A DNA stretch of 64,000 nt from Perkinsus chesapeaki ATCC PRA-425 (taxonomy: Eukaryota > Protista > Perkinsozoa). Positions 29,847 to 39,912 of this stretch are shown one piece after another. A model generated the notes under the pieces. It saw nothing but the letters and a program-made list of their open reading frames with translations. It was not told the DNA's origin and made no database searches. Each line of letters starts with the position of its first letter. Position 1 is the stretch's first letter. Made by a program: the position numbers and the translations under genes. The stretch covers positions 32,346 to 96,345 of the forward strand of contig JAAPAO010000064.1 in assembly GCA_013115145.1 (NCBI GenBank). Reading direction: 5' to 3'.

Positions 29847-30314
29847 ATGAACATTCAAGCTTCTAAGCGCAAAATGATAACTCAAAGGAAGGGTTGGTCT
29901 CTATATGGTAAAGGATGTTGTATGTTATTCCTACTTGGCATGCTGTTGACTATGCTTGGCAATGTGGGAGGCTGTAATGACCCTTCTCCAATGCCGGAAA
30001 GTGGCCTGTATAGTGGCCAGAATGGGAAGTATAGCTTCCGTTGGAATGTTCAACACTTTCCCGGCGATCTACTCAAGGGTAGGGCTTACATTGCCGCTAC
30101 TCGTCTTGATATCCCAGAGCCGAAGGAGTTCACTGCTTCTGCGGTTGCGTATTGGCGTGGTCCTCCCAAAGGGTACACTATGGACTTCAACAGATCGGAC
30201 GTTGGTTTGGTCGAGCTTTGCAAGAACCTAGAGATGAACCCCAATGATTGGTGGGGGTTCAAACATGGATCAGATTGGATTGAAGCATTCGGTGTTAAAC
30301 TACAGCGTACATAA
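29847..30314 (+). CDS. Small secreted or anchored protein, paralog 1 of 3 (155 aa)
   Basis: Intronless. GKGCC-MLFLLGMLLTMLGNVGG hydrophobic segment, then a beta-rich aromatic domain; closely similar to 38906-39373 and homologous to 34748-35250. Confidence 0.75.
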   Translation: MNIQASKRKMITQRKGWSLYGKGCCMLFLLGMLLTMLGNVGGCNDPSPMPESGLYSGQNGKYSFRWNVQHFPGDLLKGRAYIAATRLDIPEPKEFTASAVAYWRGPPKGYTMDFNRSDVGLVELCKNLEMNPNDWWGFKHGSDWIEAFGVKLQRT

Positions 30315-30367
30315 CCTCCACTTGGGAGTATGTGATCGGATCTCTCATATCCCATCTTTCAATGCTG

Positions 30368-30389
30368 AGTGAAGGCTTCACTGTGAGGC
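30368..30389. mobile_element. Putative excision footprint, W=agtgaagc (1 mismatch; duplicated at 39427-39448)
   Basis: agtgaag|gcttcact|gtgaggc. Confidence 0.6.
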
Positions 30390-30407
30390 TCAAGCATAAG
30401 TCTCAGG

Positions 30408-30429
30408 CTTACATGATGTAAGTTACATC
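30408..30429. mobile_element. Putative excision footprint, W=cttacatc (exact; decayed duplicate at 39467-39488)
   Basis: cttacat|gatgtaag|ttacatc. Confidence 0.75.
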
Positions 30430-30478
30430 CAGTAAGTGGCAATCCTTATTTTATTGTATCAATGATAACCAGTAAGTA

Positions 30479-30500
30479 GTAAGTACTACTTACTAAGTAG
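30479..30500. mobile_element. Putative excision footprint, W=gtaagtag (exact; empty site in paralog at 39538-39545)
   Basis: gtaagta|ctacttac|taagtag; the paralog has plain gtaagtag. Confidence 0.85.
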
Positions 30501-31178
30501 TCGCCAGACGAGTTTTCTCTTGCTCGCTGACCCTCTCAGCCTTGCTAATCATTGTGTTGAAAATGAGGTAAATATAATAATAGCCCAATAGGTGGATCCA
30601 GTTCACAAGCTTCCTTGCAAACGGGTGAAGTTATCCAATCGTGTGTAAATTCAACAGTCTCAATGATAAGGTCCTCCTATCCTCACTAGGCCTTCCTGTA
30701 AACTGTAGCTCCGTGGATTCATGTTATAATGGGGTGGGCTAGTGTGCCGCCCACCCGCTTGACAAGCTCTGTGGTGTACTTCTCATCATTTTAGTACATT
30801 AAGAAAACCTATCAGAATATGTGATATCTATCGGTGTTTGGAGACCATTGTCAATAGATATGACTATAATGTTACGCTCTATGCCGATCCCCCCATCAAT
30901 GCGAGTTTTTTTTCTTTTAAAGCTGAGCCAGCTGGGTGTGGTGTGAGCCAGTAGAACGCGTCCTAGGTTAGAACTCTCACCCCGTACTTCCCTGCTTCCT
31001 GCACATAGATATCGAGCATTTATAAGCTTAATAATGGTTATATATTGGCAAGTTTTGCTTAGAACATGCGGACCACTGGAGCGTCGCTCGATACTCACGC
31101 CCGCCGTGAAAACCGCGCCAGTGGATATACTAATTCTTAAAACGGATTTTATGGCTGAGTGCGCTTCTTCTCACCAAG

Positions 31179-32906
31179 TTGTTAAGCTTTGAATGTCAGG
31201 TCCTTATAGGCAGACGAAGCCGGATTGCCCTCGGTACCGATCCAGTTGAGAAGATACTCCGTAGATATGCCTCTGATCCAGCTGGGGACATCCTAGAGAC
31301 TCTCTGTAAAGCCTGTGTGGAACAGACTTCTCCAGACAATGGCCCGGTTACGGGTTCAGATCGCAAAGCTCTGTTTGATGATCTATGGGCAACTCTTGCT
31401 GATGCCGTATCGGCTACCATGGCAGAGACCGCACTCAGCAGCCTGGATGCAGCAATTGTCCTCAAATGCTTCGCCTACTGTAACAGGGTTCCTCCAAAGC
31501 CACTGTTGCTCAAGTTACTTCGGCGAGTGGTAGGCAGAGGCTCTAAGAGGCTCTCCGAATTCGGCCCGCTTTACACTTTGCAATGTATCGCGAAGTTGCC
31601 CGAAGTCGATGAGGAGGTCGGTCAGATAGCCGGTAATATTGTCGGCTTTGGTCGCCGAAGGTTGGAAAATATGTCCGTGAGCGTCCTGGGGCAGACCTTT
31701 GCCGCCGCCAGTCATCTGGCTGGCATTCCCAATCTGCCGAGGTGTCTCAAAATGAGGCCCTTCATCGACGCTCTTAGCGAGGAGTTGGCAGGGAGATGTC
31801 ACTGGGAAGGAGGGCCAGGTATGACCGAAGCTGAGCTGATGGGGCTTGTTCATGCATTGGGAAGATTGGCCCAGTCCACTCGGGGCAAAGGACTGCTCAT
31901 TGCCTTGGAACCGTGGGTCGGCAAGGCCCTGTATTCGCTGACTTTACCCGACTTGGTCGCCGTTGCGCACGCGTACACTCGAGGCGGACAAGTTGGTGAG
32001 GCCGGCAAAGTTACTGTTAATATCCTTTGTGCATGCGCTCGAGAGCTTAGAAGGATTCCTACAGAGGCTTGGGACGGTAAAAGCCTTACCATCTGTATCA
32101 ACAGCTACGCTATGGGACGGGTGGCACATGAACGTCTGCTATCAAAGCTTATAGAGGAAGTACTGCCGGCTCGAGTGGGGACCTTCAATGGGATGCAGAT
32201 TGCCCTCGTTGCACATGGTCTGACCAGATTGAAGCAGCCGGTGCCGGCCAGTGTCTGGCTGCGGGCCCAAAGTGTTGTGGAGAGCGTGAAAGATTGGCAG
32301 CAGATCACGCTTATTCTGCAGAGCTATGGAAAGAACCAAGCAAACGTGGTGGACCCGGAGGCAATGGGGGCAGCTTTAGGGCGAAGGATTAGGTCATTGA
32401 TGAGAACTCAGCGACCCACTATCGAGACGCTGCCGGTGCTTGTGTATGCTTTGTGGAAGTCAGACGTTCAGGTAGAAGCAGAGTGTTGGGAGGCGGTGGG
32501 CCTGGCCTGCGCGGATGTATTTTCTGACGAAAAAAGTGCAAAATGGCGGCTCAGTGAGGCTGCGAACATGATGTCGGCCCTAAGCAGCGTAGCTCGACCG
32601 GAAGATGTAGGTTGGATTCATGCGTTCACTGGAGGGGTCATCGATATGCTTTGGAAACACCCGGAAGCTGCCACTGGTGACGACTTAGTCAAAATAGGCT
32701 CGGCCTGCGGTAGGCTCGGTCGGACCGATGCCCTAGTTGTTCTCGAGAAAGCTGTCAGGACATCCGCTCGCAGCGTATCAGAGCTCGGTTACATCCCCAA
32801 AGGCAGACTGGCTGGGGCTATGGTGACACTGGGATGTTCCAGCCAGGATGTGCTGCAACTATTGAGCGAGACCACCCCACCGCGAAGGATATGGGCGAAA
32901 GGGTGA
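31179..32906 (+). CDS. Alpha-helical repeat protein (HPR/OPR/FASTK-like), probable organellar RNA-binding protein; start uncertain
   Basis: 575-codon intronless ORF with ~37-aa helical repeats (LPDLVAVAHAYTRGG, SLTICINSYA, QIALVAHGLTRL, QITLILQSYGK). Confidence 0.6.
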   Translation: MLSFECQVLIGRRSRIALGTDPVEKILRRYASDPAGDILETLCKACVEQTSPDNGPVTGSDRKALFDDLWATLADAVSATMAETALSSLDAAIVLKCFAYCNRVPPKPLLLKLLRRVVGRGSKRLSEFGPLYTLQCIAKLPEVDEEVGQIAGNIVGFGRRRLENMSVSVLGQTFAAASHLAGIPNLPRCLKMRPFIDALSEELAGRCHWEGGPGMTEAELMGLVHALGRLAQSTRGKGLLIALEPWVGKALYSLTLPDLVAVAHAYTRGGQVGEAGKVTVNILCACARELRRIPTEAWDGKSLTICINSYAMGRVAHERLLSKLIEEVLPARVGTFNGMQIALVAHGLTRLKQPVPASVWLRAQSVVESVKDWQQITLILQSYGKNQANVVDPEAMGAALGRRIRSLMRTQRPTIETLPVLVYALWKSDVQVEAECWEAVGLACADVFSDEKSAKWRLSEAANMMSALSSVARPEDVGWIHAFTGGVIDMLWKHPEAATGDDLVKIGSACGRLGRTDALVVLEKAVRTSARSVSELGYIPKGRLAGAMVTLGCSSQDVLQLLSETTPPRRIWAKG

Positions 32907-34128: not shown

Positions 34129-34150
34129 GTTTGATGATCAAACTTTGATC
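34129..34150. mobile_element. Putative excision footprint, W=gtttgatc (exact)
   Basis: gtttgat|gatcaaac|tttgatc. Confidence 0.75.
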
Positions 34151-34199: not shown

Positions 34200-34221
34200 T
34201 CCGACCGGGTCGGACCGACCC
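34200..34221. mobile_element. Putative excision footprint, W=tccgaccc (exact), nested in an older one (34195-34230)
   Basis: tccgacc|gggtcgga|ccgaccc. Confidence 0.75.
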
Positions 34222-34626
34222 GCCCGGTCGCTTTTCGGTCGCAAAACGAGACCGAAAGGGTTTTGCCGTAAAAGCCCTGGAGATGAATTCTCCGTCTTTT
34301 CACGTTCAATTTTGCCGGCGTCGAGCGGAGTTCGCTAAGCATCGTTGCACCTTGAGGCCACTTGGACGCTCTCTATCGGCTCACCCGAATACGTCACTAC
34401 TGGCTGTCTCCGGTGGGTGTCTATGACATTGCAGCCTTATCACTCATCTGCGATATTTCTGAAAGAGTCGTACGCCTTACAGGCTGAGCTTCATAATCGA
34501 GTGTGGATGGGCCAGCCTTGTTTTGAGTCACAGTTCGGTTAGCAAAGGCCTATTATCCCCTTTATGAGGCCATGAGGACTTAAATGTGGCATGTGTGCAT
34601 GGCCCGATTGTCAACACAACTTCTGC

Positions 34627-34648
34627 GCGTCACGGTGACGCCGTCACC
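34627..34648. mobile_element. Putative excision footprint, W=gcgtcacc (exact)
   Basis: gcgtcac|ggtgacgc|cgtcacc. Confidence 0.75.
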
Positions 34649-34747
34649 AAAGCCCTCAGCTTGTCGCACTCACTTGCGAAGGTGTTCTTCCGTCTTCATT
34701 CAAGTTGCATCTTGAGCTTTATTACGATCGCAAGAAGCCTTAACCTC

Positions 34748-35250
34748 ATGAATGTTCAAACCTCTAAAGGCCAAGCGAGGACTCAAGAGAAGGAATGGTC
34801 TCCTTATGGCAAAGGATGTTGTATGTTATTTCTACTTGGTATGATGCTGACCATGCTTGGATATGTTGGAGGCTTTCGCGACCCTCCCCCAATGCCTAGA
34901 AACGGCTTGTTCGCTGGCGTCAGTGACAAGTATCACTTTCGTTGGTTCCTTCATAACTTTGACTCCGACCCATTCGAGGGTAGGGTTTATATTGCTGCAA
35001 CTCGCCTTGATGTTATAAACCCGAAGGAATTCAATGCTACGGGTGTTTTATATTGGCGTGGTGATTCACCAAGATATGCTATGGAACTAAATAAGTCGGA
35101 TGATGGTTTGGTAAACCTTTCCCGTAACATCGGACTCCGATGATCGGAGTGGACCCCAATGATTGGCAAGGGTTCGATCATGGATCAGATTGGATTGAAG
35201 CATTCGGTGTCAGACTGCGATATGAAAAATATCCACCAGACGGCATTTAA
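34748..35250 (+). pseudogene. Small secreted protein, paralog 2 of 3, frameshifted by a 14-nt footprint
   Basis: Homologous to 29847-30314 and stops at 35143. Removing 14 nt restores ...NIGVDPNDWQGFDHGSDWIEAFGVRLRYEKYPPDGI* ending at 35250. Confidence 0.85.
35128..35149. mobile_element. Putative excision footprint, W=catcggag (exact), inside the paralog 2 CDS
   Basis: catcgga|ctccgatg|atcggag. Confidence 0.85.
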
Positions 35251-35792: not shown

Positions 35793-35814
35793 TGCTGAGG
35801 CTCAGCAGCTGAGC
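35793..35814. mobile_element. Putative excision footprint, W=tgctgagc (exact)
   Basis: tgctgag|gctcagca|gctgagc. Confidence 0.75.
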
Positions 35815-36091
35815 TGAATAAAATGGTCGGCTAGCTCTGTTTTTAACGGAACGTTCGAACAGCTGGGAGTGTCGAAACCGCTCCAAGTGCTCAAGGCTTC
35901 GCTATAGTTGAAACTACCTTATTTCCGCTGACCTCAATGACCGACCGCAACTTGCGGCCAAGTCTTTGCAGGTACCAGGAGTTCGGTGCCGGAGCTCCTG
36001 CACCAAATATCGGATATTCCGGATCGACGGGACGAGTGCTCCCGTGGGTACCAAACTTGAGGCGAAGACCTTCCCCAGTAGGCGGCATGTA

Positions 36092-36828
36092 CAGGGTGTT
36101 CAATAAGTTAGGGCCCACCCCCTGTAGCTTCTTATTGGCAGTAAGTTATTGCGAACGAATTGGAACCCGAGACTCATACCATTCAAAAGCTCTCATTCTC
36201 TTCTATATACTGGCTCGTCATTCGGAGCCATTCCCATGGTGTGTGACTTGTACTATTGAACGAAACGCCACAAAAATGCACGAAAACCGCTGGCAGTCTG
36301 CCAGTAACTAAGTAAGGTGCTCAACATGGCCTCCATTCGCTTTCTGGACGAGTTTGAGTCTTCTCCTTGACCCTTCGCAAGCCTTCTTTATTGTCACGAG
36401 AGGTATCGCATCTCACGCCGCGGTGAGAAGTTCTCACTGAGAACTTGCTTCAAGTCGGCGACGGTATTGAGTTCGAGAGCACCCCCCTTGATTTGCTTCT
36501 CAGTAAAATCATCAAAATAGCGCGGAAATGCAGAACACATGGTTCTGGCACCCCAATTGGGCTTGTCCTTACGAATCGCGACGATGGAATGAAGTTGAAA
36601 ATAGTTACGCTGCTGTGGCATATGCAAAAGCCCAGCACCATGGGAGGTTCTGCCAGCCCGATTTTACGGACTTTCAACCACTAAACTCGATGGCGAGTCT
36701 TCTATAGCGTGCGAGCGAAACAGCCAAAGATATGCTCTGGTAGAAGAAAATGAGGGCTTTCGAATGGCATGAGTCTCGGGTTCCAACTCGTAATACAGGG
36801 GGTGGGCCCTAACTTATTGAACACCATG
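36092..36828. mobile_element. Non-autonomous Tc1/mariner-like element (MITE), 737 bp, TA target duplication
   Basis: TA at 36090-91 and 36829-30. 35-bp terminal IR CAGGGTGTTCAATAAGTTAGGGCCCACCCCCTGTA (34/35), plus a 50-bp subterminal IR (36156-36205 vs 36741-36790, 45/50). Confidence 0.85.
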
Positions 36829-37768
36829 TATGTTTTCTGCAAGCTCAATCAGAGTCAGCAAGGTCGATCGAAGAGGGACATTGCTGACACGATTGGGCGG
36901 TCAAAACTCGACACAACTGGGTGATGGCGCGTGCCGCGCGCCAAAGTAATCCGCGCAAGCGGCACGCACGCACATAGCTATTGAATAACCGTTATTGAAT
37001 AACCCACGCCGCAGCGCTAGCTGCTAACTCGCAGCCATCAAGGTGCCCAGGAGGCACAGGACGGGACACTAGTCCCGCTCCCCCGCGGCCATAGCCACGG
37101 GCTTAATTCTTCAAACCTGGTCTTGACACATCAGCGCTGTGCAGCACTGCCGCGAGTGAGAGCGTCAAACGGCTCGACTCACGGCACAAGTCAGTGCAAA
37201 CACGACATGCAAGGAAGACCTAACCCCATCCGAGCGGACTCGTGAATACTCGCCTATCAATGTTTCCCAATGATGAGTATTCTCAGTTGCGGCTCGAGTT
37301 TTGTCTGTTCTGGGCTTATCCGAAGCCTTCTCCAGCCCGTGTGTGTTACATCGAAATCAATGGTGCACTTTGAGTGACCGTCTCACCGATATACTATCGA
37401 AAACGAATTAGCAGTGGTAATAGCACTCATATTCCTCACTTACGGAACAATTAGGTGAGAAGCAAAAATACATCGTGTATCATACATACGCTAAAACCTC
37501 CGTCCGTGGCGGGGAAAAGTTTACAAATGAACCGGATAAAGTTGAAGATTGTTCATTCTGGCCGTGGTAAAGGGCAGTTACCAGCATGACAGAAAGTGGA
37601 CATTGTGTCAGGTGCCCGCGTGAGGCCAGAAGAGTACTTGATCCGATTAACATCTAGGAACCTTGAGCGTATCGAGAAGTTCTCCTGGAAGGTTCTCTAA
37701 GGAACCTTTCCTTAGGCTCATTGCATGATGCTGTCGAGCTCGAACCTTCGTAAGTATGAAGAGGTTTT

Positions 37769-37790: not shown

Positions 37791-37874
37791 CAGAGCTCAA
37801 CATAGAACTTGAATGAAGAACGCCTCTCCAAGACGATAACAGGAAAATTGGGTGACCTGGAAGACTCTGATTAC

Positions 37875-38156
37875 TAGTACAATCACGTGAAGTACGTACA
37901 GTACAATTCCTACCCGCTTGTTCATTGCCAATGAATCATTGGTGATGACCGGTCACTACTATTGTTAGTACAATCACGTGAAGTACGTACAGTACAATTC
38001 CTACCCGCTTGTTCATTGCCAATGAATCATTGGTGATGAANNNNNNNNNNNNNNNNNNNNNNNNNNNNNNNNNNNNNNNNNNNNNNNNNNNNNNNNNNNN
38101 NNNNNNNNNNNNNNNNNNNNNNNNNNNNNNNNNNNNTGACCGGTCACTACTATTGT
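37875..38156. repeat. 91-bp tandem repeat spanning an assembly gap (N at 38041-38136)
   Basis: Unit tagtacaatcacgtgaag...gaccggtcactactattgt starts at 37875 and 37966; its tail resumes after the Ns. Confidence 0.85.
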
Positions 38157-38905: not shown

Positions 38906-39373
38906 ATGAACATTCAAACCTCTAAGCGACAGATGATGACTCAAGAGAAGTGTTGGTCTCTATGCGGTAAAGGATGTTGTATGTTATTCCTACTTGGCAT
39001 ACTATTGACTATGCTTGGTAATGTGGGAGGCTGTGATGACCCTCCTAAAATGCCGGAAAGTGGCGTGTATAGTGGCCAGAATGGGAAGTATGGCTTCCGT
39101 TGGAATGTTCAGCCCTTTTCCGGCGATCTACTCCACGGTAGGGCTCACATCGCCGCTTCTCGTCTTGATATCCCAGAGCCGAAGGAGTTCACTGCTTCTG
39201 CGGTTGCGTATTGGCGTGGTCCCCCCAAAGGGTACACTATGGACTTCAACCGATCGGACGTTGGTTTGGTCGAGCTTTGCAAGAACCTAGGAATGAACCC
39301 CAATGATTGGTTGGGGTTCAAACATGGATCAGATTGGATTGAAGCATTCGGTGTTAAACTACAGCGTACATAA
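38906..39373 (+). CDS. Small secreted or anchored protein, paralog 3 of 3 (155 aa)
   Basis: Intact ORF MNIQTSKRQMMTQEKCWSLCGKGCCMLFLLG...EAFGVKLQRT*. Confidence 0.75.
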   Translation: MNIQTSKRQMMTQEKCWSLCGKGCCMLFLLGILLTMLGNVGGCDDPPKMPESGVYSGQNGKYGFRWNVQPFSGDLLHGRAHIAASRLDIPEPKEFTASAVAYWRGPPKGYTMDFNRSDVGLVELCKNLGMNPNDWLGFKHGSDWIEAFGVKLQRT

Positions 39374-39635: not shown

Positions 39636-39912
39636 TAATAATAGCTCAATAGGTGGATCCAGTTCACAACCTTCCTTGCAAAGGGTGAAGTTATCCAATC
39701 GTGCGTAACTTCAACAGTCTCAATGATAAGGTCCTCCTATCCTCACTAGGCCTTCCTGTAAACTGTAGCTCCACGGCATCATGTTATAATGGGGTGGGCT
39801 AATGTTCCACCAACCCGGGCTTGGCAAGCTCTGTAGTGTATGTTTCTCCCTTTGTGTGCATCAAATGCACTTTTTTGGTGGAAAAACTTTTTACGAAAAA
39901 GTGCAAAATGTT

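Follow-up and report, generated by a model that had tools for sequence, protein, structure and literature searches.

A putative hAT excision footprint truncates a member of a species-specific gene family in Perkinsus chesapeaki

A gene of the clam and oyster parasite Perkinsus chesapeaki is truncated by a 22-nt scar that appears to be the footprint of a hAT-type element, which would have inserted in the coding sequence and later been excised, leaving what is most likely a recent loss-of-function allele; we put the probability of this reading as a whole at roughly 70%. We infer the excision from the geometry of the scar and not from an observed event, since neither an element-filled nor an unscarred allele of the gene was seen. 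The window, that is, the whole 64-kb stretch of DNA that was analysed, lies on contig JAAPAO010000064.1 (assembly GCA_013115145.1), window position x being position x + 32345 of the contig, and it contains three paralogs of a protein of about 155 aa: paralog 1 (29847–30314), paralog 2 (34748–35250) and paralog 3 (38906–39373). Paralog 2 is the broken copy, and paralogs 1 and 3 (both forward strand, 155 aa) are intact. The closest relative of paralog 2, with a DNA identity of 79% over 1.19 kb, is the intact paralog 4 (protein P0002, 162 aa) on JAAPAO010000093.1 (locus L001, 10001–10489), which is a dispersed paralog rather than an allele because its neighbours differ. The survey of family copies covered the window and other fetched P. 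chesapeaki loci (about 145 kb, 11 copies), the upstream and downstream pieces of paralog 2 were analysed separately with no joined sequence being built, and reads were checked through the Logan contigs of two sequencing studies, X1 (2020) and X2 (2022).

Alignment of paralogs 1–3, and again with paralog 4, gave a single 14-column gap that is filled in paralog 2 alone, lies inside 35128–35149 and is the sole coding-region indel in both alignments. The 22-nt scar occupying these positions, CATCGGA-CTCCGATG-ATCGGAG (net +14 nt), consists of positions 1–7 of the 8-mer CATCGGAG, then its full reverse complement and then its positions 2–8, with 0 mismatches to this model; its two palindromes have C and G at their centres, which complement the G (position 8) and the C (position 1) of the 8-mer respectively. 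At the homologous site a plain 8-mer is found in paralog 1 (CCTAGAGA), paralog 3 (CCTAGGAA) and paralog 4 (CCTCGGAA), and the insertion is derived, since all other family copies lack the 14 nt. From its ATG at 34748 the truncated reading frame of paralog 2 (34748–35143, forward strand) runs for 131 codons to a premature TGA within the scar (35141–35143) and is deposited in GenBank as hypothetical protein P0003. What follows is a stranded C-terminal piece on the same strand (35146–35250), offset by +2 from the upstream frame, with 34 open codons and a TAA (35248–35250) that has the same stop position as in paralog 4. This piece reads ...DPNDWQGFDHGSDWIEAFGV..., is colinear with paralogs 1, 3 and 4, and encodes DWxGFxHGSDWIEAFG, the most conserved motif of the family. 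Neither piece has any further stop or indel and the start codon is kept; the other family copies in the fetched loci gave uninterrupted alignments in 10 of 10 cases, paralog 2 alone being split (1 of 11). An earlier note on this DNA had claimed that the +14 nt created the TGA, that the downstream frame matched the C-termini of paralogs 1 and 3, and that the rest of the coding sequence was clean so that the event looked recent. The two alignments and the reading of open frames agree with it on each of these points.

The scar also makes an ATGA at 35140–35143, where an ATG sharing two letters with the premature TGA opens a mini-ORF of 36 codons in the frame of the C-terminal piece; this is probably an accident of the letters of the 8-mer. 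As a separate observation, the DNA of the C-terminal motif (35152–35210, 30237–30295 and 39296–39354) is almost identical in paralogs 1–3, synonymous sites included, whereas these genes are about 72% identical outside it; the read contigs branch at this DNA and have loose ends at 35210.

The family to which paralog 2 belongs appears to be confined to P. chesapeaki. No Pfam family matched the paralogs and neighbouring ORFs (five window proteins), and HMMER, run exhaustively against 1.84 billion cluster representatives, returned P0004, P0005, P0007 and P0008 as relatives (30–36% identity), all from P. chesapeaki, and none from outside the species. The C-terminal motif is kept in all seven of the other aligned family proteins. 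AlphaFold models paralog 4 (mean pLDDT of 80, above 90 at residues 50–155) with a disordered N-terminus, a hydrophobic helix at residues 20–40 and a compact beta-rich domain, and the equivalents of the last two strands of this domain (144–147 and 150–155) lie beyond the break in paralog 2. The N-terminus, with about 20 polar residues followed by a hydrophobic helix of 20 residues, looks in this model more like a signal anchor than a cleavable signal peptide. A Foldseek search against the PDB and a shape search of the ESM Atlas gave a weak likeness to small lipocalin/YedD/NlpE-like beta barrels (TM 0.4–0.5), with no structural match in the PDB at E ≤0.001. The farthest that the evidence reaches is a predicted species-specific, membrane-anchored or secreted small beta-domain protein. 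Pairwise dN/dS values within the family (0.36–0.53) indicate coding sequences under moderate constraint.

Paralog 2 is most likely a recent loss-of-function allele, a young pseudogene, because its protein loses the most conserved segment of the family, the last two strands of the beta domain. It is unlikely that the gene has escaped inactivation, whether because the 131-aa product is functional, because the frame is rescued by splicing of 26 nt, or because translation restarts at the ATG at 35140. Such an escape would agree with the annotation of the 131-aa ORF as a protein in GenBank, and the segment 35124–35149 does begin with GTAA and end with AG, its 26 nt displacing the reading frame just as far as the +14 insertion does, so that its removal would yield an in-frame product four codons short; the scar-made ATGA likewise supplies an ATG in frame with the C-terminal piece. 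However, the truncated product is without the most conserved motif and without two strands of a confidently modelled domain, one domain would not be rebuilt by two separate peptides, and 26 nt is far below the usual sizes of spliceosomal introns. The 39-nt intron in the GenBank model of paralog 3 might seem a precedent for so short an intron, but it takes out a conserved strand and probably reflects faulty annotation.

A different objection is that paralog 2 was already dead or dispensable at the time of the element's visit, the scar marking the pseudogene without having caused it. The size of the family (11 copies in about 145 kb), its fairly fast evolution (dN/dS as given above) and the scar-dense DNA around paralog 2, where any one copy may be under little selection, all leave room for it. 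Against it, neither piece of the gene has another stop, another indel or a lost start codon, and the region upstream of paralog 2 is 97–100% identical to that of the intact paralog 4. Additionally, when codon changes are polarised with paralogs 1 and 3, the lineage of paralog 2 receives 6 synonymous and 4 non-synonymous ones and that of paralog 4 receives 4 and 12 (small counts), so paralog 2 has fewer non-synonymous changes than its intact relative and a ratio far from the approximately 3.6 non-synonymous changes per synonymous change expected of long neutral drift. Prior death of the gene therefore seems improbable.

The comparison of paralogs 2 and 4 (dN/dS 0.52, dS 0.23) also bears on the age of the lesion. 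A flawless scar, the lack of any other lesion and a paralog 2 lineage that has not drifted neutrally indicate a break that is young compared with the duplication; judged from these sequences, it looks recent and is probably disabling. A tract of 240 nt (34625–34863, against L001 at about 9880–10116), made up of the last 120 nt or so before the ATG and approximately the first 115 nt of the coding sequence, is 97–100% identical between paralogs 2 and 4 although its flanks are 65–85% identical and the two genes lie on different contigs. Such identity points to a recent gene conversion or to very strong constraint, and conversion would blur the dating of the break. A further perfect scar located 100 nt upstream of the ATG of paralog 2 (34627–34648) is also present, with 1 mismatch, upstream of paralog 4, so that it either predates the duplication or was transferred by gene conversion; since it stands at the edge of the probable conversion tract, it was dropped as a dating marker.

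The scar in paralog 2 is one of many of the same form. The scar model fixes 14 positions, with a chance expectation of about 2e-4 matches per 64 kb, and the window holds 17 perfect matches, 11 with one mismatch and 9 with two mismatches, compared with means of 0, 0 and 0.1 respectively in 40 Markov shuffles. When the same geometry was sought with units of 5, 6, 7, 9, 10 and 11 bases, the window gave 2, 0, 1, 0, 0 and 0 matches, so that among unit lengths of 5–11 enrichment was seen for the 8-base geometry only. Thirteen of the 17 perfect scars of the window lie between 29.4 and 39.7 kb; near paralog 2 they include two intergenic scars upstream of the gene (34129–34150 and 34200–34221) and one downstream (35793–35814). 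Four other P. chesapeaki loci hold 28 further perfect scars, with 21 of them (plus 9 with one mismatch) in the 20 kb of L003 (JAAPAO010000159.1, 11860–32231), which carries four family copies, and 1, 1 and 5 in L001, L005 and L004 respectively; scar density thus differs more than 20-fold among loci. Perfect scars in about 145 kb supply 44 distinct 8-mers, and the composition of these is biased towards a palindromic GT....AC, with G at position 1 in 43%, T at position 2 in 43%, A at position 7 in 41% and C at position 8 in 45% (binomial p of 0.002–0.011 each). This bias resembles nTnnnnAn, which we take to be the target preference of Ac-type hAT elements; the paralog 2 site CATCGGAG has the A at position 7, but A rather than T at position 2.

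These features can be accommodated by a single excision and repair route. A cut-and-paste transposon that duplicates 8 bp of its target, most likely a member of the hAT superfamily, would have entered the coding sequence of paralog 2 at CATCGGAG. At excision the transposase would cut one strand a single base inside the flank, and each flank end would close into a hairpin whose tip is the complement of the base adjoining the element. Unfolded, the left hairpin would read as positions 1–7 followed by the reverse complement of positions 1–8, and the right hairpin as the reverse complement of positions 1–8 followed by positions 2–8. If both hairpins were opened 8 nt or more from the tip, one of the resulting single-stranded tails would carry the 8-mer and the other its reverse complement, and the two would pair perfectly over the 8 nt of the duplication and no further; annealing at this microhomology and trimming of whatever lies beyond would then put 22 nt in the place of 8, whatever the exact site of the nick within that limit. 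The proposed hairpin-annealing route would explain the fixed length of the scars, their two central bases and the +14 outcome. The flank hairpins on which it depends are an established feature of hAT, MULE and Transib elements (PMC5499845, PMC1978519), footprints of hAT excision carry palindromes centred on the complement of the element-adjoining base, and palindrome arms of up to 20 nt have been found in yeast (PMC5873905).

A structure of this kind could in principle arise without a transposon, through a template switch in replication (a quasi-palindrome mutation) or another hairpin-forming nuclease acting at a break. Strand switching can yield forward-reverse-forward triplications, and no transposon or element-filled site that would account for the scars was found in the window: a search for terminal inverted repeats (≥9 nt, 150–7000 bp apart) with 8-bp repeats on their flanks returned one weak, chance-like candidate there, and no hAT domain was seen in the Pfam scan of five window proteins or in the precomputed Pfam tags of gene calls from the fetched loci. 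On the other hand, neither a constant length nor a preferred target is expected from template switching, whereas the 8-base unit is constant at 17 perfect sites in the window and 28 in other loci with units of 5–7 and 9–11 bases unenriched, the palindrome centres always complement the outer base as in hAT hairpins, and the target 8-mers carry the palindromic GT....AC bias. An origin without a transposon accordingly has little probability, and excision of a hAT-type element is the reading retained here.

Two candidates for the source or for a filled site were considered and rejected. An element of 741 bp (36090–36830) has 37-nt terminal inverted repeats that start TACAGGG, with TA outermost, as well as 51-nt subterminal inverted repeats, and looks like a MITE of Tc1/mariner or pogo type; it could not give scars based on 8 bp. 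Its read depth is raised and a contig variant in X2 skips 613 nt, which indicates that other copies exist in the genome. The second candidate was a 1.95-kb difference between the units around paralogs 1 and 3 (30779–32728 against 39841–39911), which has neither a duplication nor inverted ends and represents a replaced segment. Apart from this difference, 1.95 kb in unit 1 against 71 nt in unit 3, the two units are 82–90% identical; the 71 nt of unit 3 contain a scar with one mismatch.

The earlier note had left open that reads might show no insertion, a doubt that is refuted as far as contigs can tell. The region 34849–35210 is spanned by a contig of 362 nt from X1 and one of 360 nt from X2, with 0 differences and 0 gaps, and the depth of these scar-spanning contigs is that of single-copy flanking contigs. 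That the 14 nt are an artefact of assembly or sequencing is hardly conceivable, for although the assembly does have an N gap nearby (38041–38136) with a duplicated 79-mer adjoining it, independent contigs from two studies cross the site identically at normal depth. No contig without the 14 nt was listed in either study (contigs can hide minor alleles), and the same contigs and the public proteins yielded no unscarred or element-filled allele of paralog 2. Contig variants near 34592–34803 were rejected as alleles of paralog 2, as their letters are those of paralog 4 (cross-mapping), and two runs guessed to be RNA contained no part of the stretch. Just before the 96-N gap, a segment of 79 nt occurs two times at a spacing of 91 nt (37870–38039), with one scar doubled (37921 and 38012); this duplication is likely to be a scaffolding artefact.

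Frameshift alleles that arise from footprints are a classical finding with Ac/Ds, Tam3 and other hAT elements, and the break in paralog 2 is a real but ordinary case of this known gene-breaking route. What is new is that the gene truncated by such a scar belongs to the host and not to a transposon; what is unusual is the uniform, long-armed +14 outcome. In the literature searched, no publication on nuclear transposon scars in Perkinsus was found. As with Ac/Ds in maize, Arabidopsis, yeast and Candida, the 8-bp duplication is kept, palindromic (P-nucleotide) additions stand on the complement of the element-adjoining base, repair after hairpin opening would use microhomology, and footprints in coding sequences give stable frameshift or insertion alleles (PMC5873905, PMC1978519). 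Ac/Ds footprints are heterogeneous, with 28 types among 128 Candida revertants and palindrome arms mostly of 0–3 nt, unlike those of P. chesapeaki, where one outcome dominates, always +14; there the palindrome on either side has arms of 7 nt, and the inverted duplication would serve as microhomology over its full 8 nt. The scar also corresponds to what Hermes/hobo-type hAT elements, with their V(D)J-like flank hairpins, would leave if two hairpins from one-base-offset nicks were opened and annealed, a correspondence read here from the sequence, and the GT....AC-like palindromic bias of the target 8-mers is a further likeness to these elements. MULEs, with duplications of 8–9 bp, make flank hairpins too (PMC5499845) and may be the source instead, although excisions of Muta1 in yeast were mostly precise. 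With regard to the gene, the family is comparable to the surface or secreted families of parasites that evolve by birth and death: it is found in P. chesapeaki only, has tandem and dispersed copies, a dN/dS of about 0.4–0.5, an N-terminal hydrophobic anchor and one freshly broken copy. Its predicted fold bears no more than the weak likeness to small lipocalin/YedD/NlpE-like barrels given above.

The generality of the effect is less certain than the lesion. It had been proposed that each excision from a coding sequence gives a frameshift; this stands for the canonical scar, since 14 is not a multiple of 3 and a +14 scar in a coding sequence always shifts the frame, but the proposal assumes that repair is always canonical. 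The companion idea of the earlier note, an irreversible off-switch for effector-like genes, fared worse. Nothing speaks for an effector-like role beyond the N-terminal hydrophobic helix and the restriction to P. chesapeaki, and in the sequence covered a recognisable coding sequence is hit in 1 of 11 family copies and by 1 of approximately 37 window scars, which makes the break an occasional accident and not a demonstrated switch. Among the open frames flanking every scar in the window and the four loci there was no second clear case of a scar-split coding sequence. In a crude test, long open frames flank about 27% of scars as against about 50% of random positions, and this deficit fits either selection against coding hits or an intergenic preference.

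The break provides a clean case from nature in which a host gene appears to have been disrupted by a transposon's footprint rather than by the inserted element. The Perkinsus scar is constant in shape, so the letters alone suffice to identify the lesion, and a genome-wide census of footprint-caused pseudogenes is feasible; the same shape gives a handle on how Perkinsus repairs hairpin-ended breaks. A more far-reaching and tentative proposal, which we regard as doubtful, is that the repair of hAT excisions in Perkinsus is nearly deterministic, proceeding through annealing of the full 8-nt inverted duplication and always giving +14, and that transposon traffic could drive the birth-and-death turnover of families, because scars pile up round clusters of species-specific membrane-protein genes (13 of the 17 perfect window scars within 10 kb; 21 in the 20 kb of L003). 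If this were true, each visit of a transposon to a coding sequence would leave a permanent, self-labelling frameshift, and transposon traffic could be a main driver of turnover in species-specific membrane-protein families, countable and datable directly from genome sequence.

Some minor observations concern the public annotation and the surroundings of the family. The public gene models of paralogs 1 and 3 look wrong: paralog 1 is fused with a downstream ORF of 575 codons into a product of 693 aa (29922–32906), and the GenBank model of paralog 3 (39011–39373) starts at an internal Met and contains the 39-nt intron discussed above. Pepsin-like (Pfam Asp) genes are found near family copies, within about 10 kb of them in L003 (1–282) and within about 1 kb in L004 (7780–8868), and the window has a pepsin-fold ORF (5929–7056) approximately 23 kb from paralog 1; a pepsin-like gene beside family copies may be a recurring neighbourhood.
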